Below are positions 1 through 62,157 of a stretch of 64,000 nt of DNA, piece by piece. The translations under genes and the position numbers were made by a program. A model generated the notes under the pieces. That model was given only the letters and a program-made list of their open reading frames with translations. It was not told the origin of the DNA and searched no databases. The first letter of the stretch is position 1. The number at the start of each line of letters is the position of its first letter. The stretch comes from Lepidodermella squamata (taxonomy: Eukaryota > Animalia > Gastrotricha): positions 1,364,001 through 1,428,000 of the forward strand of contig JBLDXI010000002.1 in assembly GCA_047495785.1 (NCBI GenBank), given 5' to 3'.

Positions 1-3000
1 GGCCTTCCTTTTCGGAGCTCGCAGCTGCCTCGCATACTTGTGTACCATTGCTAGTGTATTAATATGCATATTGTCTCGTGATAGTCAGTAAAATCTATAT
101 TAATTCTACGACGGCTCCTCGTTGGCTTCTGCGCGCCGCCGCCGCTATATACCTGGCTGGGCAGGGTGGGAAAGCCGGGCGGCGCCAGAGCGCGCGCACT
201 TTGCCGACCGCGGGCGGTTCATAAAATTTGCGTTATATATTGCCCGCTGTCCAATTTAGCGGCGAAATGTATTTCCTGCCACACCTCGCTCACGGCTAAT
301 GCATGACATGCGAAGACCGACTATTTGGCCTTATATGTTTACCCAAAGGCCAACATCGTGAAAATAAGTAGCCACAGGGGGTTTCGTTTAATTTTTAATT
401 TAAATTATCGCGGAAAAAATTAACTTCATCCGACACCCGTTTTTCACGCGCCCGGTCTGAGCATGCACCCAGTGAAGCGTGTTTATTTATTGTTTATTGC
501 TGTCTCGAGCTGTCGCGTGCTCATCAGCCATTATTTTCCATCATCAATGAAGTCGCGTGCAATTAGCTGCTCATCCCTGCTATTGCGGTTGATTGCGCCG
601 GCAACCTTTTAGCCTCTCTTCGCCGCCGTTGATGTTCGGTACGAGTCCATACCTTTGAGCGAGCGACCGGCCAAGCCAATCCCGGCGGCGCCATTGGTGT
701 GAAAAATCTATCTAATGACCGGTCCTTTCTACAAAGTAATAATGATTTCACGAGTTTAATCACACACATTGCGGGGGAAAAATCGGTGTGGTCTATTAAT
801 ATTAATGATCCACCTGCGCAGTAGTAGAAAGTAGTAGATATAGCTCATAGCTGGTAAGTCGGCGAGCAAACACGCTGGCACTCGACTCGCGGTTCATTCC
901 TTTGCGGATTTCGCGGATTGCCAGGGTGCCAGTCACTTGACTGTAGAGAGCGGTCGTACACCGTGGAACCCGGCGGCTCCGGGGCCTTTTAGCCGCGGCA
1001 TCGGCAACACCCGTGCCGTCATTCACTTAATGCTTTGTTGCGCAACGCCTTGTTTACCGTCATTATTATTCTTGTTATTCGTTATTCAACGACAAACAGG
1101 TACCGATTTTGTGCTGGCGATGATGACGGCATCCGCTGCAGTAATTGCTGGAACTAAGCCCCGGAATTTTTACGCAACCGAAAATTATCACAGCTTTAAT
1201 TCCCGCCAGCGGTTCTCTTTTGTCTTGCTAATGATCCCGCTTTCTTCATCATACCTTCAAGGCTTATTGCCGTTGTTTTTATTCATTAATTTCAATTATA
1301 TGATAACTTTGTTGTTAGAAATCAAAGATTAATCCGCGTCCGTACTCTAAAACGTCAAGCCCGTGTTGAAAAATCGCGGGATTATCTCTTTGTTTATCAT
1401 CGTTATTTTTCTATAGGTGAAAAATAATAGATTAATCAAACGTAAGGTTGACAGGTTTTTTAACCAGTCTCAATAACAATCATTATTTTCCGGAAACAAT
1501 GGCCAATTTTTGCGTGACGGCTGTTTAGCGGAGCGTAAACACGCACCCGTTTGCGGTTGAACCGCGTGTTTTTTCGCCGCTACTTTTTTTTGATATTTTT
1601 GCGCGTTAATTCTACGCCACGATACTCACGCTTGATTACTATACTTTTCTTGTGCCATTATTCCAAAGCGTATAATAAACACGCTCACTTGTCGTGTTGC
1701 AAAAAGAGATACGCTGATAAAAATTTACCTCTTGCTCTGGTATAGGTAACGCGTGTTATTTTTTAATCTTCTCAAGTTTGCATTTTTATACACACAAATT
1801 TATTTAATAAAAATATTATATTCGCCTTTTTAGACCTGCTGGTAAAAGTTGTTATTTTGAACTCTTCCTTTTCGCTGCTGAGAAATGTAATTTTCAGAAT
1901 AAACATTGACACTTTTTCAATTATTAATAATAGTTATAGGCAGTAGGTATAGGACAAATTGTTCTGGTGAGGAAGCGTTTAGCCACCGCGAAATTTTGTC
2001 GGCATTTCGCTCATCGCTGAAGCGTGCTCGCGTTTTACGACTCGAGATATGAAGCAGATGGTTGAATCTTCATGATAATAACGTTAAATTATAGGGTTAT
2101 TACAAAATCGCAGTTGTACATCTCAGCATTATTAGGCAGCTAGTTTTCAACATTTTATGTTATCGTCAAACAAAGTTTTGGCGGCGACGGCTTCTTCTGC
2201 TGCAGGTGCATTTCTTGTCAGCAGTCGTCAAAGAATAGTGGTAGTAGTAGCGAAGATGAAACGCGCTAATGCCTTGTGCCTATATTACGATGTATATAAC
2301 TACGCGAGAGTGAAGCCAGGACGCGTTCTTTTTAGCATTGTAAGTCCAATTATTGGCAAGAACTGCGCGGCGTTGAAATTTTGGCGCTAAAATAGTTATA
2401 CGCAGGTAGAGGCATATACATGGCTTTGCGTGTTGAATGTTTGTTCAAGAGACGACTCGTCTTCTTTTCTTTGAAGCTGCTCCTTCTCATCATCATCATC
2501 ATCAACATCATCATCACGCCGGGCCTTTGTTTCATTCAAATAATTTGACGCACAAAATTCGGCTTTTCTGTGTCTTCTTATATTACCTGTGTGGAAGATG
2601 CGCGGCCGATATATCTACAATACAACATGTGTACACCACCTTAATGCGCTTAGTACTACTAATAATAATAATAATAACAGCAACGACGTCAAACCAACAT
2701 ACCACCCACTTTGGGACACAAAGTTTACAACATCTCGTAAAACAAGTGTTTTGGTGAGAAAACGTTCGTAGTAGCAATACCTGCTTATACATGGTGTTTG
2801 TTTAGGTAAAATTTAAGCGCACGAAACACCTTATATTTTTGTTTTCACCGCGCCGCGCTCGCAAAAAGTCAGGCATTTCGTGTGCTCTCCCACAACAGCA
2901 GCATATGCCTGCCCCTGGTTGTCGTCGCCAGGCCTTTCTTTCTTTTATACCTGTATAATGTTTGAACAAGTAATTATTGAAACCTCGTCGAAACGACAAC

Positions 3001-6000
3001 AACTTCGACACATAAACAACAATAACACCACATTTTTTACGCGCTCGCGCTGACGTGATATTTATCTGTAAACACGATTTTTTAATTAATTTAGATTTCA
3101 CGCAATTTTTCTATTACACCTGCATCTCTATAGATTATAATTTACATGAGCACTCATCTTTTCGCGCTTAATTTATTCGGCCCGATGTACGTATTTATTA
3201 CCCGAACGCAATTACCGGAGACGCAAATTATAGATTTTTCGAGATAATTGAGTAAGGGTATTCGTTAAATAGGAAAAATCTACTCATTTTGTAGAGATAT
3301 AGCGATTGCCCCCATTTTTAGTGCGAACGTATCGTTTTCTGTCTCGGAAGTCATCTTTCAGCTTTCCTCTTTCGAAAAATGTGTTAATTATTCTTTGTTG
3401 AGCTGTATTCTGGTCTCCTTTCGTTTGTAGATTTTCGGAATTTTCGCCCAACTTCCAAATTCCAACCTAAACGAGAACGATTATTTTAATAAAAAATCCT
3501 CCTTAATTAAATTAATTAAAATTGAGAGTTTTTTCTATAGTTTTCATTGGATAACTTTGGCGTAAGTAAGTCAGGAAAATTCGTAATATATAATGGAGAT
3601 TTATTAACATGATATAGCTCAGCATCACGCGCACATGCGGTCAGTTCGCTAGTTAAATATTAACCGTACGGCAGTAGTACTGGGCCTGGCCACCTCATCC
3701 ACCTTATACCTTATACCTGTCAGCCGTGGCTGGGCGTAGCACGCCCGACTGACAGGCGTTGTACTAGTGGGTGCAATTAAACCGCTGCTCGAGAGCAATA
3801 AAACGCGACCTTGTGTCCGCCGCGGCGACTCTTGGGTGTGACTCGCGGTGCAGCACGCTACGCGCGTCTGCCGGCCATCAATCAGACATCAGGCAGCAGG
3901 CATCGCGGCCAGCAGCGATGTGGCTTTTTAATGCCTGGTATCGATTTCGAAATCTGCGCGCCCGCAAGTCAGCGATGCCGCGCGCGCCCTGCTCCGCCAT
4001 CACCGACGCGTCCACCCAACAACAACAACAGTCACATTTATAAACAAACATGCGGTTAAATATTGAGAAGCCGGTTCTCGGATTTCATCGACAATTATTA
4101 CTACTGGCTGATGCTGTTTGTTGTTTAAAATACTGCTGGGCGTTGTTGCTCTAGTAAACAGACCAACCACACCTTTTTCGCGCACTGGTCTCCGATGACA
4201 GCAGCCGGCCGCCGATAAGTCCCGGTGGACCTGCCGAGACGCTTGAATTCAAACACAGCTTGGCTGCTTTATTAATTTTCCATTCATAATAATTATTAGC
4301 CGCACAGTGTCAGTCACCCTCGCGAAACTGAAATTTTTCAAAGTCGAAATTTTTTTTTTGTTATTTTCTAGAAATTTTTAATTGAATTTTTGTGTAGAGC
4401 CATTGAACAACAAAATGGGCTCCTTTTTATCGATACTTAAGGCTGTTCTCTTTTCACCGTCGTCAACATTATTTCTCGCAATTATTTACAAAATAACAAC
4501 GCGGCAAACACGTGTCGGCCCGGCGCACCTAGCGATTTTGTTGTTTTCGCCATTATTTCTTTCGATCATAAATTACACGTATATTGGACATGAGATGTCG
4601 TAATAATAATGGCTTGTGCGCGCCGTGATTTTTTGCCCCGAAACGCGCACGATATTTGGCCTAGGCAACGCGCACGTCGCCATCATCACCTAGGCCTAAA
4701 ATGTGCGATGGTTGTTGTTGTATTTCCGGATTCCGCTGCGGCTAACATGTCCGGATTCCGAAATCGAGCCGGTAGGTATTAGGTTAGGCACGTTAATGCT
4801 GTTGATGTTGATACGTTAAAAGGCGCGTGCTGAGGCTCTAAGCAACTTTTCAATGTCCGCCCCCCAATTTGTGTTTGTTCGCTAATAACACAGCCAGCCG
4901 TGTAGGAATTTACCGCGGCGGCGTCGCCCACATTTTTCGCTATGATATATTTGCTCTGTCTCACTCATCGCATAAGAAAAATATCGGCAACTTTCTTCCT
5001 CCTTAAACGAGGCATTTATTGTTGTGTTTAGGTAAATTATCTTCTCGCGATATTTGTATACTATTAACTCTATGACAGCATATACAGGTAGCTTTTAGCC
5101 GGCGTAATTGCCTTGCGATTATTGGCTTCTTGTCGCGCCGGTTTGTTGACCGACTCCGCGACGCAATTACCCGACGACAGCCACAACCACACCAAACATT
5201 TCGGGAAAAAATGTGAGGATTTTACGCGCGTAAATACCCGATTTCGCGTTGTTTACGCCGTCGTACAAAAATCAATCGTCGTTTATTGGCGGCGAAAGAT
5301 GAAAATTTTTGTTTATTTGCACAAGTTAAGCGAGCTGGCTCTTGAAAACACGCCGCCGGCAGCAGGCACTTTATATTACCTGCGTTGGATCTTTTTTAAG
5401 GTGGGCCGTTATCATGCGATAACACAACAGATGCCCTGTGTTGCTTTTTCGAGGCGCCAGACGCAGCGCAAACAACTTTCCACCTCGTCGTTAATTTGTA
5501 ATTGTTGAGGTATCGGAACAAGTATTTGCGTCGAATAGTTGCACGCGCCTCGGGTTTATTGCAGGGTAAATATTACGGCGGCATTTCCGCGCGTCCCCGA
5601 CGTGACTTATTGGCTATTATCTATCGAGGGCGCGATCATTGCGCAACGCGATAAAGTCCTTATCTCGCATTATGTAAAAACCGTGTTCTCACTCACTCGA
5701 CTCGCGCGACAACTTTCAAGTAAGTAGCACGAGAGGTGCAGCGGAATTTTTGGCGTCACGATTTTAAGTAGGGAGGGGGGTGCCTCGCCGCCGACTGTCG
5801 CGCGATATAGCGAGACACGAGACGCTTAACTAGTTTTATAGATTTTTCTGCGCCCTGTCTCTCGAGGTCCGTCGAAAATTTCTCGACAAACATTTTAAAT
5901 ATTTATAAAATGTTATTACACGCGCCATAGCCACCATGGCTTTATTGTTTTGCTAGCTATTGCTGGTGCATGACAACAGGGTGTATCATCGATGAGCAGC

Positions 6001-54081: not shown

Positions 54082-56011
54082 ATGCGAGTGGTGGCAGTTA
54101 CTGTCTACCTGTTCGTGCTGCTGTCATCTGCCCATGGCTTTCTCGAATTTTTGTCTAGTCTCTCGCCGACTCGCATTGTCGACAGCTTCCGCGAACTCAT
54201 CGCCACATCACGGCGCCAAATCGAATCGGAAATCGAAGCGCATAAAGCGATGTTAGCTCACCTGGAAAAAATGCGAGATTTCTCGTTTGACGAGGAGAAA
54301 AAACTCGAAGTTATGGCTAGCTCAATCACGGCCTTAATGATGGATCTACCGAATTTGTATACGAAAGTGAAAGCGTCCAGTGACCTTCTCGTATCTCACG
54401 TTATCACCCTAAACGAAATCCAAAACAAGATGAACTCAATCAGAAGTCAATCCTATCTAGCTATCGATGAAGTGATAAAAAGTGAGTCAATAAATCTCCC
54501 TTAAAATTATCCTAATATAAAACCCTAACCTTTAGGAATCCGGGAATTGATGAAATCGATGCATGCCAAGAATGACGAATTACCTCCCCTGGTTTTTGAA
54601 CTTATAGAGCCTCACCGGAGGAGGCCGGAATACGGCGAGGCCGAACCGGAAGGTATTGCCGGGAACTACGACGAGGCGAAGGAGCGGGAGCTGTTTGACA
54701 AGGCCTTCCAACTTCAAAAAGATGAAAAATTCCAACCAGCCTACGAGATGTTTATGGAATCATGGCGAGCTTACAACAGAACAAAGCAATTAGGAATTCC
54801 GCATAGCTTGGACGAAGTCTACATCCTGGACTACGTCCAATACACTGCTTTTAAAACTGGCAGGGTAAAGGAGGCGCATGCAGTTTGCCAGCGATTGCTG
54901 AACCAAATCGAACTGACCGAAGAGCAACGAAATCGGTTTACCAGCACCAATAGATTCTACGAACAGGAACTTTCCGCTGAATCTCTGAAAGAAATGGCGA
55001 AGAAAATCGACGACGAGCCGATTGAGAAGCAAGTAGAAATGGCGAATATGTTAGTGGCAACGAAGCAATACGACTATTGCCGTGATGACCATGCTGCCGA
55101 GGCTCTTATGAAATTGGCCGCTAATCCTAAGCTATTCTGTCGATACGACAACCGTAATCGTAATCCTGTTCTACTGCTTGCGCCAGTTCGCGAGGAGTTC
55201 ATCAGCATTGATCCTCTAGTCGTTATTCTTTACGACGTAATTTTGCCGTCTGAAATCGAGCAGTTTCAAGCGACTGCCAATAAAACGTTGTCGGTTGCCG
55301 GTGTTGTTAATTCGTCGAATTACGGCACTGAAATTCAACTTCACACCAGAAAGGCTAAAACCGCATGGATTGAAACCAACAATTTACCCCGTTTAACGAC
55401 TCGTTTAGAGGCATACACTGGTCTGAATCCCTACGAAGATGGTTGTGAAATGTACCAAGTCGGTTACTACAAAATTGGAGGACGTAAGTCTATTACAATC
55501 TTTTGAGTTTTTCTATTTTCAATAATTCCAAACAGATTACAGCCCCCATTATGACACGTTGTTCGAGGCAGCAACTGAAAGTGGTTTGGGCGATAGGATA
55601 GCGACACTGCTGATTTACATGAACGATGTTGAGGAAGGTGGTGGTACGGTGTTTACTGATTTGAAAGTTCGCGTTACTGCTACAGCTCGAGCCGGTGTTT
55701 TTTGGTACAATTATTTCAAGAATGAAACTGCTGACATGAGAACTATGCATGGTGCTTGCCCTGTAATCCGCGGTGAAAAATGGGTTAGTTTTCTAATAAT
55801 CCATATTATAGGAAATATTTCAAGTTTTTTCGTTCAGGTCTCTAATAAGTGGTTCCGGTGGAGGGGCCAACTGCTGCATAAATTGCAAGGAAAATCGCCT
55901 GAGGAGAATTTTTCATTCGCCGACTACAATTTGACCCCGGCGGCCATACAACTTCGCAGCGAGCGTAATAAACCGCCTGTAACTGAAACACTTCCTCGTA
56001 AACTCAGCTGA
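54082..56011 (+). CDS. Collagen prolyl 4-hydroxylase alpha subunit-like, full length (copy 3); exons 54082-54481, 54536-55483, 55536-55783, 55838-56011
   Basis: Same architecture as copy 1: [42 protein letters not shown]. Confidence 0.92.
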
Positions 56012-56211
56012 ACAAAGGTTCATTTTTTACAAATCCTGTATCCATGTCATTCCAAAAATATGTTATCGCGTAATGAAACTTTATATTTTTACTAAATTAC
56101 TGAAAAAATAAAGTGTGCTGGAACGTATTTTAATTCAAGCAATGTTTTGAACAACGAACGTACGACCGTCAACACGTAAACATCTTTTCACTTGGTAATA
56201 CGCGAGTTGCG

Positions 56212-57030
56212 ATGAACAAGGTTTTACTCGTAGCTTCCTTAGCCGTCTTGGCTATTCTCCCGGAGAACTTTTTCACTTTCGTCTACCAAGCAACTCGAGA
56301 TTCTGTCCTCGGCCTCATTTACGACAACACCGAAGGTTACCTGTTTAGCAAAGGTGAATCGCTGAAGAACGAGGGAAAATGGGACGAAGCTCTCGAGGCC
56401 TTTCAAGAATCTTGGAAAGCCTACAACAAAACTGAAGAGAACGGCGGGTTTCATTTTGTCGATCTTCTGACTTTGCTGGACGGAATACAACTGATAGCGT
56501 TCAAAGCCGGGAAATTCGCTTACGCTAAGTCGGTCTGCGCTCTGATTTTGGAAAGCGAGAAGATTGAGCTGGATGAGACACAACGGTACACGCTGCAGCG
56601 GAATATCGATTTGTATGAGCAGCAAATAACTGCTGAGCTGCATAAGGAGCTGGCCGATTCTGAGGGTGGCACTGAAAGGGATTTTTGGGATGTTGGGTTC
56701 CAGTTTATCAAGTCCGAAAATTGGGCCGATGCTTACGAAAACCTTCAGCAGTCGCTACGGATTCACAATAAGGCCGTCGAGCTCGGGCTGCCGAGCATCA
56801 TTCCCGAGATTCAAATTCTAGACCTCATTCAGTACACTGCGTTCCAGCTTAAACAGTACGAAGATGCGTTCGAAGTCTGCTGGCGTATTGTATACGATTT
56901 GGAGTTAAGCAAAGATCTCGCAGCTCAGTACAAACCTACAGTTGACAACTGCAGGGTGAATCTCAGAAATAACCCTGGCTTTAAACCGAAAAGAGCTCGT
57001 GATTATGATGCTAGTGCTTATGATGACTGA
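56212..57030 (+). CDS. Secreted/ER protein of two tandem P4H-type TPR/PSB modules, without catalytic or N-domain
   Basis: Signal-like N-terminus; two repeats of F.KG...W..A...F..S...YNK....LD.IQ..AF....A..VC..I, matching the PSB region of the neighbouring P4H genes. Confidence 0.8.
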   Translation: MNKVLLVASLAVLAILPENFFTFVYQATRDSVLGLIYDNTEGYLFSKGESLKNEGKWDEALEAFQESWKAYNKTEENGGFHFVDLLTLLDGIQLIAFKAGKFAYAKSVCALILESEKIELDETQRYTLQRNIDLYEQQITAELHKELADSEGGTERDFWDVGFQFIKSENWADAYENLQQSLRIHNKAVELGLPSIIPEIQILDLIQYTAFQLKQYEDAFEVCWRIVYDLELSKDLAAQYKPTVDNCRVNLRNNPGFKPKRARDYDASAYDD

Positions 57031-57401
57031 ACAAAATCGGGAGGTTCCAATATTCTCTTCACGATCAAAAATAAAAAGAAAGAAAGCTAATGCAGAAGCC
57101 CGATATGCAATCCAAGAAAAACAAGGTTGAACCAGGAGTATATAGCCAATTTATTTTCAATCTTATACTTGTTACAACACGCCAACATTACAAAAACTAC
57201 TAGAAACGGCTAGCTCAGCAGCGCTTACAAAATAAAACAAGAAACAAACAGTACCACTTCGGCCCAATAGGGCAGCTGGGGAATATTCATTATTTTCTAT
57301 ATATATAGGTAAGTCTATAATTGTGATAAATCATTGTCAAAATTACCGAGAAGGTGCCAAGCAAATGTTTTAAATGCGGAGGTTTCAAGCTATGTCATGA
57401 G

Positions 57402-60400
57402 CTACAGATCGGGTGTAACTAGTTTAGCAGCGTTTTCTGCCGCCGATAAAAGTTCGGTAGTTTTCTGTTTTTCTTCTGTAAATCCATACCCCGAACCGAC
57501 CAATTGCAAAGCTGTTCGATCCTTCTTGTCTTTCGACAGAGCATCAACGCCGAATTGCTCAAGGAGTAACTTAACAACATCTACACTACCCCATTCAGCT
57601 GCGTGGTGCAATGGCGTCTTGCCGTCCTTATCCTTGTCGTCAGCTTTGGCTCCGAAATCTCGAATCAGCAGGTTTACAACTTCTGCATGACCACCGTGAG
57701 CTGCGTAGTGCAATGGAGTCATGCCGTTCTCATCCTTGTCGCCAGCTTTGGCTCCAAAATCTCGAATCAGTAGGTTTACAACTTCTGCATGACCACCCTG
57801 AGCTGCGTAGTGCAATGGAGTCTTGCCGTATTTATTCTTGTCGTCAGCTTTCGCTCCAAAATCTCGAATCAGCAGGTTTACAACTTCTGCATGACCACCC
57901 AGAGCTGCGTAGTGCAATGGAGTCATGCCAAATAATTTATCCTTGTCGTCAGCTTTGGCTCCAAAATCTCGAATCAGCAGGTTCACAACTTCTGCATGAC
58001 CACACTGAGCTGCGTAGTGCAATGGAGTCCAGCCGTCCTTATCCTTGTCGTCAGCTTTGGCTCCAAAATCTCGCATCAGCAGGTTTACAACTTCTGCATG
58101 ACCACCTCGAGCTGCGTAGTGCAATGGAGTCATGCCAAATAATTTATCCTTGTCGTCAGCTTTGGCTCCAAAATCTCGAATCAGCAGGTTCACAACTTCT
58201 GCATGACCACCCAGAGCTGCGTAGTGCAATGGAGTCCAGCCGTCCTTATCCTTGTCGTCAGCTTTGGCTCCAAAATCTCGAATCAGCAGGGTTACAACTT
58301 CTGCATGACCACCTCGAGCTGCGTAGTGCAATGGAGTCATGCCAAATAATTTATCCTTGTCGTCAGCTTTGGCTCCAAAATCTCGAATCAGCAGGTTCAC
58401 AACTTCTGCATGACCACCCAGAGCTGCGTAGTGCAATGGAGTTAAACCGTCCTTATCCTTGTCGTCAGCTTTGGCTCCGAAATCTCGAATCAGCAGGGTT
58501 ACAACTTCTGCATGACCACCTCGAGCTGCGTAGTGCAATGGAGTCTTGTCGCCCTCATCCTTGTCGTCAGCTTTGGCTCCAAAATCTCGAATCAGCAGGT
58601 TCACAACTTCTGCACGACCACGTTGAGCTGCGTAGTGCAATGGCGTCTTGTCGCCCTCATCCTTGTCGTCAGCTTTGGCTCCAAAATCTCGAATCAGCAG
58701 GTTCACAACTTCTGCATGACCACGTTGAGCTGCGTAGTGCAATGGCGTCTTGTCGCCCTCATCCTTGTCGTCAGCTTTGGCTCCGAAATCTCGAATCAGC
58801 AGGTTTACAACTACTGCATGACCACCCTCAGCTGCGTAGTGCAATGGAGTCCAGCCGTCCTTATCCTTGTCGTCAGCTTTGGCTCCGAAATCTCGAATCA
58901 GCAGGGTTACAACTTCTGCATGACCACCCAGAGCTGCGTAGTGCAATGGAGTCCAGCCGTCCTTATCCTTGTCGTCAGCTTTGGCTCCGAAATCTCGAAT
59001 CAGCAGGGTTACAACTTCTGCATGACCACCTCGAGCTGCGTAGTGCAAAAGCGTCTTGTCGCCCTCATCCTTGTCGTCAGCTTTGGCTCCAAAATCTCGA
59101 ATCATCAGGTTCACAACTTCTGCATGACCACGTTGAGCTGCGTAGTGCAATGGAGTCCAGCCGTCCTTATCCTTGTCGTCAGCTTTGGCTCCGAAATCTC
59201 GAATCAGCAGGGTTACAACTTCTGCATGACCACCTCGAGCTGCGTAGTGCAATGGAGTCTTGTCGCCCTCATCCTTGTCGTCAGCTTTGGCTCCAAAATC
59301 TCGAATCAGCAGGTTCACAACTTCTGCATGACCACGTTGAGCTGCGTAGTGCAATGGCGTCTTGTCGCCCTCATCCTTGTCGTCAGCTTTGACTCCAAAA
59401 TCTCGAATCAGCAGGTTTACAACTACTGCATGACCACCCTCAGCTGCGTAGTGCAATGGAGTCCAGCCGTCCTTATCCTTGTCGTCAGCTTTGGCTCCGA
59501 AATCTCGAATCAGCAGGGTTACAACTTCTGCATGACCACCCAGAGCTGCGTAGTGCAATGGAGTCCAGCCGTCCTTATCCTTGTCGTCAGCTTTGGCTCC
59601 GAAATCTCGAATCAGCAGGTTCACAACTTCTGCATGACCACGTTGAGCTGCGTAGTGCAATGGAGTCTTGTCGCCCTCATCCTTGTCGTCAGCTTTGGCT
59701 CCAAAATCTCGAATCAGCAGGTTCACAACTTCTGCATGACCACGTTGAGCTGCGTAGTGCAATGGCGTCTTGTCGCCCTCATCCTTGTCGTCAGCTTTGG
59801 CTCCAAAATCTCGAATCAGCAGGTTCACAACTTCTGCATGACCACGTTGAGCTGCGTAGTGCAATGGCGTCTTGTCGCCCTCATCCTTGTCGTCTGCTTT
59901 GGCTCCGAAATCTCGAATCAGCAGGTTTACAACTACTGCATGACCACCCTCAGCTGCGTAGTGCAATGGAGTCTTGCCAAAAACATCCTTGTCGTCAGCT
60001 TTGGCTCCAAAATCTCGAATCAGCAGGGTTACAACTTCTGCATGACCACGTTGAGCTGCGTAGTGCAATGGCGTCTTGTCGCCCTCATCCTTGTCGTCAG
60101 CTTTGGCTCCAAAATCTCGAATCAGCAGGGTTACAACTTCTGCATGACCACCTCGAGCTGCGTAATGCAATGGAGCCTCGCCGAACCTATCCTTGTCGTC
60201 AGCTCTAACACCGTTTTCGTTTAACAGGCTTCTAACAAGCTCAGCGTTACCACATTCTGCAGCGATTTGAAGCATTGTCCTTCTGTAACCATCCGCATCG
60301 CTCATTGTGCATCTTTTCAGCAACGTTATTGACCCGTAAAGATCTTCTGCTCCACGGTGCAAGTTGAGCAGATCATCATAGGTTTTGCTTTCAATCAGTG

Positions 60401-61912
60401 GAATCTGTAATTCAACAATATGACGAAATGATTTACGTATTCAGTTTTTAATTTGATTCAGAATTGCTTTTTCTGCTCTGTTTTTCGTTACAATGTTTCG
60501 GTTGTACTCAAATGAACTAAGCCAAACCAAAATAAACCGAAATGTGCGGGCTAGATGCTCCTATAAAGCAACCTATAACGTCTACCCTAACAGTTATTTG
60601 TGGCTCTCAATTTTCTAGGCTGTACGTAGTTATTTATTAGCACCACCCGAGCAATATAGTACTTATGTATCGAGATGAAGAAAAGCACTTACTACGTCTC
60701 TCACGGCATCAACGAGTCCCACCTCCTCTGGCCAGTAAGCTTTCTCCAGCAAATTCGCAGCAGATGGCCGCCTTCCCAATTCATTATCGAGCAGCCTGTC
60801 GGGGCAGCTCATCATCCAGTTCACAAAATCTCTGCATTGCTGCGAATATCCTCGTGATTCTTCGTGTGGTCTTATATGGAATAGTAATATCCTTTAAAAG
60901 CTCATCATTTTAAATGTTAAGCGCTCACAATATCGTCATCCATTCAACCCAGGTTGGCCTAGTGAACTGAATGAAGCAAATTAATTTAACGCATATAGGC
61001 TATTCTGGCTGAGATTTTTTGCAAGAATTACTGGCTTCCTGTTGTTAGCAAGCTCGTACAGCGTAACCCCTAGTGACCAAATGTCTGTCCTTGGCGTATG
61101 CTCGCGGAAACCCCACAAATCGGGTGACATATACTCCTTCGTACCCAGGATTAATTCATCATCGTTTTCGTGCACCCTGCTCACAGACCTAATATCAAAG
61201 AGCTTAGATTTATGAACTAACATCATTTTGGTTTGATTGCAAAACTTCACCTCTGTAAGATTTTAACCAGCCCAAACCCACCCAATTTCAACCATTTTCT
61301 ATCTTCACTGACGTAGATATTTCGCGGCGTTATGTCTCGGTGGACAATGCCCTTCTTATGAAGGTAATTGACCGCAAGTAGTAGCTGGTCAACCCATTCA
61401 ATGAATTGCGTTTCAGTTATGCTGGATGTGTGCGGGTCGCGAATGTAGCTCTCAAGAGTTCCTCCAGCACAATGCTCCATCACAACATAGTACATTTCGC
61501 AATCCTGATTGTCTGGATTCGAGCCTTTGTACATTTCTAGCGAAAGATCACCTTGTTATATGATGTAAAATATTCAAAACTATCGGCACCTCTGAATGCT
61601 CCAAATATCCGAACTATCAGGGGATGATTAATCTTCATCAACTTGGCGTGCTATTTTTGAGAGAAAAATCATAAACAAATTCACAAGTAATATAGTTATT
61701 ACATCTCGTAAGCTCGTTTCAATGACCTCTTCCACTTGTCTATTCTTGTTGTATTGTTGATCTAATCTAAGTCTGGTCAAATTGACCTCTTTGGCGATGT
61801 AACGCTGAGGACCGTAATAGCGCTTTCGAACTATGAACGCTTCCCCATGTTTACCAGCTCGTCCCAGACTTTCGACTATGCTGAACTGGTTGGATGAAGT
61901 AAACAAAGCCAT
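57402..61912 (-). CDS. NEK-like (pseudo)kinase fused to about 28 ankyrin repeats; proposed exons 61912-61703, 61650-61590, 61536-61251, 61188-61032, 60966-60929, 60870-60693, 60404-57402
   Basis: Kinase subdomains YIAKEV, HPLIV, VVMEHCAGGTL, YLHKKGIVHRD, GTKEYMSPD, DIWSLGVTLYEL, RRPSAANLL are joined by 52-65 nt introns. A phase-0 GTAAGT (60692) to TACAG (60405) splice puts the kinase in frame with the 986-aa ankyrin ORF. Both parts are confident; the fusion is inferred. Confidence 0.72.
57630..60188 (-). repeat. Coding tandem array of 25 near-identical ankyrin repeats (22 x 102 nt + 3 x 105 nt)
   Basis: Unit xxxxTPLHYAAxxGHAEVV[NT]LLIRDFGAKADDKD counted from the translation; unit lengths sum to the 2559-nt span. 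Confidence 0.95.
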
Positions 61913-62157
61913 TCTTAGCACACTTCAGACACTTCAGCCAGAAGAAAAATAGGGAAAAATAATAACCAAGCGAACCCTGAAAAACAAATATAATTTTCTG
62001 GCCTTTCTTATTCGTAGGAAGACAGGAACAGATAAAGTCGGCGTGATATCTCGACTGATAATATCATTCATTTTACAAATCTGTTAAAATGCGAATTTCC
62101 TCTTTATCTGATATCACTCAAATCCCACTTTTTGAAACATCAAGCAAGCGAAGGCAG

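Follow-up and report, generated by a model that had tools for sequence, protein, structure and literature searches.

A predicted pseudokinase-ankyrin gene with an array of near-identical repeats in the gastrotrich Lepidodermella squamata

Homogenised repeat arrays with diverse binding residues are a hallmark of fungal non-self receptors and are rare in animals. In our study, such an array was found in the gastrotrich Lepidodermella squamata, in positions 1,364,001 to 1,428,000 of contig JBLDXI010000002.1 (GenBank assembly GCA_047495785.1). This stretch of 64,000 nucleotides (nt) is called the window, and all positions refer to it. The gene lies on the minus strand at 61912-57402 and joins a kinase domain, in which the aspartate of the DFG motif is replaced, to 25 near-identical ankyrin units. 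The locus raises the question of what kind of gene this is and what its uniform scaffold with varied residues may be for. We consider that it probably belongs to a large family of NEK-like kinase-ankyrin genes, lineage-restricted and with cytosolic products, in which a non-catalytic kinase fold is combined with a binding solenoid that carries shuffled cassettes. The function of an immune or non-self sensor, which the original prediction had proposed for this gene, is a guess.

The ankyrin array and its variable positions

The last exon was found to encode, in order, a linker of about 35 amino acids, an N-terminal cap (N-cap), 25 near-identical units, one divergent unit, a degenerate C-terminal cap (C-cap) and a short tail. 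The units of the array are 34 amino acids long, except for three units of 35 amino acids (type KLFGM). With Tandem Repeats Finder (TRF), one tandem array was detected, which spans 57597-60204 and has a period of 102 base pairs (bp), 25.5 copies and 90% matches. Pfam gave 26-27 repeat matches (Ank_2, E 2e-256; Ank, E 1.7e-243), and the PDB matches of the exon included ankyrin-1/2 and designed ankyrin repeat proteins (DARPins). By its families (PF00023 / PF12796) and its solenoid fold, the exon encodes an ankyrin repeat protein. The 25 near-identical units between divergent caps, as originally predicted, were confirmed by translation, TRF and Pfam. An AlphaFold2 model of the N-cap and eight units was a confident solenoid of regular helix pairs, with a predicted local distance difference test (pLDDT) score of 94.6 and a predicted template modelling (pTM) score of 0.88. 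In the model, columns 9-16 of the unit form helix 1, columns 19-28 form helix 2 and columns 29-8 form the loop, and in the N-cap, residues 11-18 and 21-30 of the modelled segment are helical (pLDDT above 84).

The mean pairwise identity of the 25 units was 89% for nucleotides and 83% for amino acids, with 88% identity to the consensus. Runs of units such as 4-6, 9 and 15-16 were found to be 94-100% identical. The framework had been described as almost invariant at the DNA level, which holds as far as the identity of 89% is concerned but was slightly overstated, since 38 of the 102 nucleotide columns vary and the proportion of synonymous differences (pS) in the framework is 0.09.

Tandem near-identical units are prone to misassembly, which could have created the array as such, or the number and order of its units. 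Four read runs were used, as short-read contigs only; those of X1 and X2 are too short to span the 2.6-kb array, and 817 bp, or about eight units, are skipped in one X2 contig. However, the longest exact internal repeat is 222 nt in an array of 2,559 nt and 20 of the 25 units are distinct at the DNA level, so that long reads would place the units uniquely. The reading frame of 3 kb is intact, the window lies within a contig of more than 2 Mb, and contigs from both X1 and X2 cover all 30 bins of the examined stretch. An artefact is thus highly improbable in our view.

The six most variable of the 34 columns were 4, 5, 6, 7, 15 and 16, which hold 66% of the column entropy. Columns 4-7 contained eight types of hairpin (EGDK, KDGW, KDGL, VFGK, RFGE, (K)LFGM, KYGK and ENGM), and columns 15-16, which follow LHYAA, contained seven types of pair (QR, RG, LG, EG, QC, QG and HG). 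These variants are exactly those listed in the original prediction, and the variation is concentrated where it had been placed. On the model, the variable columns fall at the tip of the hairpin and on the final residue pair of the inner helix. The less variable columns 20 (E/V) and 23 (T/N) belong to the outer helix. The DARPin library of Binz et al. 2003 reportedly used hairpin positions 2, 3 and 5, helix positions 13 and 14, and position 33; positions 2, 3, 5, 13 and 14 are taken here to equal unit columns 4, 5, 7, 15 and 16. With the library positions so assigned, five of the six variable columns coincide (hypergeometric P = 1.3e-4), which together with the structure model agrees with the claim that the variable residues lie at DARPin-type positions.

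Replacement changes were strongly concentrated in the same columns. In the six binding-face codons the proportion of nonsynonymous differences (pN) was 0.36 and pS was 0.32 (omega, the ratio of nonsynonymous to synonymous change, 1.2-1.5), whereas in the other 28 codons, the framework, pN was 0.02-0.04 at the pS of 0.09 (omega 0.23-0.46). By proportions, replacements at the binding face are about 4-fold more frequent than synonymous changes in the framework, and about 5-fold when corrected. Such an excess would not result from neutral decay following a recent amplification. The gene had been called diversifying, and this stands for the high pN; it does not stand for omega, since synonymous differences are likewise more frequent in the variable codons and the ratio there is not clearly above 1. 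Recombination among the units invalidates selection tests based on trees.

The cassettes occur as discrete multi-nucleotide variants, and the eight hairpin and seven helix types form 13 combinations. The helix cassettes RG, QR, EG and LG each pair with 2-3 different hairpins, and the block of units 7-10 recurs as units 13-17. This pattern fits a few older cassettes that would have been retained and re-dealt on a homogenised scaffold, rather than fresh hypermutation. The "rapidly reprogrammable" surface of the original prediction was not supported, as the pattern points to the shuffling of old cassettes and not to rapid de novo change. The diversity of the binding face was kept while the rest was homogenised, which implies that a varied binding surface may have been favoured. 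We propose that the array was amplified within the gene by unequal exchange of 102-bp units, which would give a uniform scaffold, and that the same exchange would recombine the cassettes at the hairpin tip and at the end of helix 1, which line the usual ankyrin binding groove.

The variation might instead be a by-product of unstable tandem DNA at positions that tolerate change, in a structural or targeting scaffold whose ankyrin array would direct the kinase or pseudokinase to a structure of the cytoskeleton or the cilium. In ankyrin repeats at large, it is the variable columns that are least constrained, active paralogues of the gene are NEK1-like, and the Nek-ankyrin proteins of Giardia, with their cytoskeletal localisation, are a precedent (PMC3218828). 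However, neutral decay would not give a binding-face pN about four times the framework pS (0.36 against 0.09) with intact, recombined cassettes, and the repeats of Giardia differ from one another and have a TALM motif, which this gene lacks. A role of this kind is possible but rather unlikely.

Kinase domain, gene structure and transcripts

The gene model was built by reading the sequence and by aligning its pieces to paralogues. It contains seven exons and six GT..AG introns with compatible exon phases, and its coding sequence of 3,933 nt gives 1,310 codons and a stop, with three split codons that are all sense. Five introns are 52-65 bp long and the last one (intron 6) is 288 bp. This structure, together with the GFG in place of DFG, bears out the pseudokinase and ankyrin architecture that had been read from the DNA. 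Nothing precedes the kinase fold in the encoded protein; neither a signal peptide nor a membrane segment was found in it, nor any domain besides kinase and ankyrin. The gap between the end of the kinase and the N-cap is only about 35 amino acids.

All kinase analyses (profile, PDB and paralogue) were run exon by exon. Exon 3 scored 69.6 bits and exon 4 scored 37.7 bits against Pkinase (PF00069), above the cut-off of 31.7, which places both in the protein kinase superfamily. The glycine loop was degenerate (LGRAGKHGEAF), and the VAIK lysine was present (YIAKEV). The catalytic loop HRDITPRN contained the conserved Asp and Asn, with Lys substituted by Thr; the magnesium-binding Asp of DFG was substituted by Gly (LGGFG), and APE was replaced by SPD. 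The position in exon 1 that we take to be that of the alpha-C Glu is an Asp, as aligned by eye with PKA and NEK2. A competent kinase is expected to have all of K72, D166 and D184 (PMC3218828). In this gene the Lys and the HRD Asp are present and the DFG Asp is replaced by Gly, and by the DFG criterion, as judged from the sequence, the kinase domain is a pseudokinase. Between the kinase pieces and those of the closest paralogue, the synonymous rate (dS) was 0.43 and the nonsynonymous rate (dN) was 0.14, and since omega is 0.31 the dead kinase domain is kept by purifying selection. Its most likely role would be that of a non-catalytic docking or regulatory module, with the ankyrin solenoid at the C-terminus (about 27 repeats) as the putative binding part.

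Among the PDB matches of exons 3 and 4, NEK1 or NEK2 was near the top and not best, and GCN2, PKR, STK17A, RSK and Aurora scored alike. Exon 1 gave no kinase match in the PDB below E 0.3 (best NEK1, E 0.3), being too diverged. No Pfam match to NACHT or NB-ARC was found in the three long kinase open reading frames (ORFs) of exons 1, 3 and 4 or in the ankyrin exon, exons 2, 5 and 6 lying outside the scan.

The kinase part of the exact locus was found to be transcribed and spliced as modelled, micro-exon included, since a contig of a third run (X3 contig 21) joins 61251-61188, 61032-60966 and 60929-60870 without mismatches (introns 61250-61189, 61031-60967 and the next). The run X1 is taken as a complementary DNA (cDNA) library because a SMART amplification primer is present on one contig end. 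Its contigs include a near-copy of the gene, about 90-92% identical to the window, that is spliced at or near introns 1-5, with a few unaligned letters at three joints. Exon 2 is spliced on both sides in the near-copy (joints 61650/61704 and 61536/61590), and letters homologous to the 38 of exon 5 are also present. One near-copy contig is spliced from 60693 to 60404, the kinase-ankyrin junction (joint 60405/60694 in the alignment), with 11 mismatches in 131 nt, which places the kinase and the ankyrin array of the near-copy on one mRNA. The splice 60692-60405 of the original prediction was accordingly seen in the copy of about 91% identity but not in contigs of the exact locus. The fused kinase-ankyrin transcript is shown for a close relative, and we infer it for the exact locus. 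An exact-match X1 contig covers the 3' end of the gene (57300-57649).

The second copy was found beside the exact sequence over 60172-62100 of the window, both in the 2015 cDNA run X1 and in the 2024 DNA-like run X2. It is about 90-93% identical to the window, with small indels. When the assembly was searched for the copy of about 91% identity, nothing closer than a paralogue of 74% was found besides the locus itself. The copy may represent a paralogue that was left unassembled, or else an allele of very high divergence.

The locus could also hold two genes, with a kinase-only mRNA that ends in intron 6 and an ankyrin-only mRNA that starts inside the intron and whose translation begins at the first ATG in the long exon. 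At either end of intron 6 the exact-match X1 contigs are unspliced (60652-60860 at the donor, 60275-60517 at the acceptor); contig cover is very thin in between, and cDNA-amplification primer sequence abuts 60517. Intron 6 is also much longer than the others (288 bp against 52-65 bp), and if it is retained the frame ends after nine codons, with an AATAAA at 60633-60638; the original prediction had pointed to an in-frame stop and an AATAAA near 60635-60640. However, the exact-match X1 contigs are equally unspliced at the small introns that they cover, two of which are spliced in X3, and they thus resemble DNA or pre-mRNA and are uninformative on splicing. The near-copy is spliced at exactly this junction, whose phase-0 splice sites (donor GTAAGT, acceptor TTACAG) are strong, and in each of the seven paralogues examined the kinase is still followed by an ankyrin ORF. 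The primer at 60517 was considered as a transcription start and rejected as proof, since the junction is not of the canonical template-switch type. Two separate genes are very doubtful on this evidence, and a single gene with the exons of Table 1 is preferred.

Table 1. Features of the kinase-ankyrin gene in the window
Feature	Position	Strand	Description	Basis
Exon 1	61703..61912	minus	ATG at 61912; kinase N-lobe	sequence reading, translation, paralogue alignment
Exon 2	61590..61650	minus	61 nt, HAKLMKINHPLIVRIFGAFR; end of alpha-C and beta-4	flanking GT..AG introns of 52 and 53 bp
Exon 3	61251..61536	minus	hinge, catalytic loop HRDITPRN, GFG replacing DFG	Pkinase E 3.6e-19; PDB matches including GCN2, PKR, NEK1
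Exon 4	61032..61188	minus	activation segment, P+1 loop (GTKEYMSPD, DIWSLGVTLYE)	Pkinase E 2e-09
Exon 5	60929..60966	minus	38-nt micro-exon, FTRPTWVEWMTI	X3 contig 21; absent from ORF listing
Exon 6	60693..60870	minus	end of kinase C-lobe (..GRRPSAANLLEKAYW..) and start of linker	paralogue alignment; spliced X3 contig reaches 60800
Intron 6	60405..60692	minus	288 bp, GTAAGT..TTACAG, phase 0	
Exon 7	57402..60404	minus	single ankyrin exon of about 3 kb, open from acceptor 60404 to stop	
Linker of about 35 amino acids and N-terminal capping ankyrin repeat	60198..60404	minus	..TMLQIAAECGNAELVRSLL..	translation and model
Array of 25 near-identical ankyrin units	57639..60197	minus	102 bp each, three of 105 bp; cassettes at codons 4-7 and 15-16	
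Divergent last full unit, degenerate C-cap, acidic/helical tail	57402..57638	minus	KDGKTPLHHAAEWGSVDVV..	translation
Stop codon	57402-57404	minus	TAG	sequence reading
Candidate poly(A) signal	57150..57155	minus	AATAAA, about 250 nt past the stop	inferred from sequence

Three plus-strand ORFs (593, 570 and 250 amino acids) over the array, at 57611-60224, were rejected as genes, being stop-free antisense frames of periodic sequence. Convergent with the gene, the plus strand contained at 55559-57030 a fragment of a 2-oxoglutarate (2OG)-Fe(II) oxygenase and an ORF of 272 amino acids. This ORF, hydrophobic at its N-terminus and weakly matched by TPR, is in these features like the alpha subunits of prolyl 4-hydroxylase.

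Gene family and relatives

Exon 3 was matched at least 150 times in the genome (466 candidates). The seven closest paralogues contained the motif HRDITP[RK]N and a Gly in place of the DFG Asp (GGFG in six and GGLG in one), down to 37-60% identity, and in all seven a single long ankyrin ORF was present downstream of the kinase. The search for paralogues that the original prediction had suggested thus gave at least seven genes with the dead motif and an ankyrin ORF. The ankyrin ORFs of the paralogues ranged from at least 4 to 26 repeats. More distant family members contained HRDIKPKN..GDFG, and the best single-domain PDB match of such an active-looking paralogue was NEK1 (E 1.1e-16). The term "NEK-like" is reasonable for the family because the distant paralogues match NEK1 best; for this gene itself it is not established.

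The window locus is a singleton, with the next family members on the contig about 200 kb or more away. Units at least 89% identical were confined to this gene; elsewhere the best were 78-84% identical (a broken ankyrin relic on another contig), followed by the paralogues with 64-74%. The repeats of the two closest paralogues were divergent and non-homogenised. Another paralogue, L034 (G000:C31:879000-888500, minus strand; ORF 2075-4499 from the right end), contained the dead-kinase motif and its own homogenised array of 21 units, from which it follows that homogenisation arose at least twice, gene by gene. Its array consists of two alternating unit types and their recombinants, with a consensus different from that of the window. 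The extra variability of L034 was found mostly at the same columns (pN 0.29 against 0.04, pS 0.27 against 0.06).

Further members of the family showed different states of preservation. The broken relic (L044, G000:C12:53618-57223, minus strand) is of the same repeat subtype as the window's array and contained ORFs of 130 and 136 amino acids in different frames, at 78-84% nucleotide identity to the window's units, and no kinase motif was found in its ORFs of at least 80 amino acids within the 3.6 kb examined. The second-closest paralogue (L032, G000:C31:816000-825500) was further decayed, with the VAIK Lys substituted by Glu (YVAEEI), GLG in place of DFG and an ankyrin ORF that stops mid-repeat. 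The paralogue L033 (G000:C31:1131000-1140900) contained an ankyrin ORF of 1,255 amino acids, in which a hydrophobic stretch (..ITYSWTSLFYFIIAS..) occurs twice between repeats in copies that look identical; this may be a duplicated block with an unspliced intron or a membrane segment. Several of the kinase-exon matches were paired on different contigs with near-equal scores (e.g. C42:1850471 / C8:57681 and C7:2296060 / C32:113644), which suggests retained haplotigs or recent segmental duplications.

Outside this genome, exon 3 was compared by HMMER with 1.84 billion representatives, and the identity was at most 46%; tandem-kinase proteins occupied the top ranks, and no ankyrin repeats were found in the eight proteins scanned. 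A word-based search with the whole ankyrin exon gave 120 generic ankyrin proteins, none with Pkinase, and among them were TRPN, fungal and mosquito NACHT-ANK proteins, and proteins of Wolbachia. The linker and N-cap gave one weak ankyrin match only. No kinase-ankyrin relative was found among public proteins within the limits of length and sampling of these searches, which make the blank weak evidence, as unsampled animals or models of very different length may hold relatives.

Could the gene encode a germline-diversifying intracellular non-self sensor, as first proposed, whose ankyrin face would recognise foreign or altered proteins and whose pseudokinase would relay the signal without a nucleotide-binding oligomerization domain (NOD) module? 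Its repeat pattern matches the description of fungal NOD-like receptors (NLRs), among whose N-terminal effectors Pkinase occurs (PMC4986451). The family is large and of fast turnover, with its many kinase-exon matches, variable repeat numbers and the broken relic, and the copy of about 91% identity, present in the reads and absent from the assembly, could be a very divergent allele. On the other hand, no NOD, death-fold, TIR or other immune-type domain was found in the Pfam scan, omega is not clearly above 1, and units are not shared between loci, unlike in the Podospora genes. We hold such a sensor to be unlikely. The wider proposal is similarly unlikely: the family would consist of germline-diversified, NLR-independent receptors, in which unequal exchange within each gene would keep re-dealing the two binding-face cassettes and the dead NEK-like domain would couple binding to active paralogous kinases. 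Such receptors, if real, would be an animal counterpart of the fungal conserved-repeat NLRs and of plant tandem-kinase resistance proteins, and an immune or allorecognition role would make them a new class of animal recognition receptor.

We therefore return to a member of a lineage-restricted kinase-ankyrin family, with a non-catalytic kinase fold and a solenoid that would bind through a varied surface, as the probable reading. Several points weigh against it. The copy number of the array rests on the assembly, which short-read contigs cannot verify, and no RNA contig of the four runs links the kinase and ankyrin exons of the exact locus. The binding-face omega is only 1.2-1.5, at about 3.7 synonymous sites per comparison, and classical positive selection is not demonstrated. 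Columns 4-7 and 15-16 are also the least conserved of any ankyrin repeat.

Comparison with known systems

The closest parallel in domain order is found in Giardia. In Giardia lamblia, 133 of 198 Neks were reported to contain an N-terminal kinase and 1-26 ankyrin repeats, and 71% of the 195 Neks of strain WB were catalytically dead (PMC3218828). The Giardia Neks localise to the cytoskeleton, and a deletion within the ankyrin region shifted the localisation; the association of Nek and ankyrin was reported in no species besides Giardia (PMC3218828). The gene described here is alike in its N-terminal Nek-like kinase followed by a variable ankyrin array, in a cytosolic protein without receptor features, and in its large family of fast turnover in which many members lack a catalytic residue. 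It differs in its repeats, as the Giardia repeats are divergent, with a TALM start and a conserved Glu at the end, whereas here TPLH is present in all units and the array is homogenised. Giardia is moreover a protist, and no sequence relationship was found beyond the kinase and ANK superfamilies.

RIPK4 and ANKK1 also contain an N-terminal Ser/Thr kinase and C-terminal ankyrin repeats in a cytosolic protein, and RIPK1-5 are essentially restricted to vertebrates and amphioxus (PMC9573974). For exon 3 as for exon 4, the 60 best PDB matches contained no RIPK chain. RIPK4 has an active kinase, and its ankyrin repeats, about 10-11 in number, are divergent. Integrin-linked kinase (ILK) combines ankyrin repeats with a pseudokinase that serves as a non-catalytic scaffold; its five repeats are N-terminal and divergent, and it is a conserved single-copy adhesion adaptor. 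In plants, the tandem-kinase or kinase-fusion resistance proteins combine a kinase, a pseudokinase and other integrated domains, in which the pseudokinase acts as scaffold or decoy. For ILK and the plant proteins, no homology to this gene beyond the kinase fold is implied.

In fungal NLRs, the ANK, TPR and WD repeats show high internal conservation, their variable sites lie on the concave face, and Pkinase is present among the N-terminal effector domains (PMC4986451). High internal conservation, defined as at least 85% identity across no fewer than 100 amino acids, was found in only 0.8% of metazoan ANK, TPR and WD repeats (Dyrka et al. 2014, PMC4986451). With a mean unit identity of 83% for amino acids and 89% for nucleotides, the array lies at this threshold, just under it for amino acids. 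Both parallels cited in the original prediction, the Giardia Nek-ankyrin proteins (PMC3218828) and the fungal NLR repeats (PMC4986451), are in print. The array resembles those of fungal NLRs (PMC4986451; Podospora het-d and het-e, PMC12222747) in its near-identical repeats, in their shuffling and in the concave-face variation of hairpin and inner helix, and in both the repeat number differs between related genes. It differs in that no NACHT/NB-ARC match was found here, whereas the fungal receptors have a NOD module and also proven positive selection and polymorphism of repeat number between individuals. The Podospora genes show concerted evolution between loci, whereas the units of this gene were not exchanged between loci.

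The DARPin principle is a fixed ankyrin framework with diversified binding positions (PMC8683736). The array is similar in that an identical framework is stacked between caps, with the diversity in hairpin and helix. DARPins are synthetic, with modules of 33 amino acids and 2-3 internal repeats, whereas the array is natural, with 25 units of 34 amino acids; library position 33 is not variable here, and the hairpin Gly of column 6 varies (G/D). An animal family in which dead kinase-ankyrin genes have expanded and arrays have been homogenised would be a new case of the evolution of a natural "binder library". Regardless of an immune role, such genes offer natural, long, consensus-like ankyrin scaffolds and a tractable case of homogenisation with retained functional diversity.

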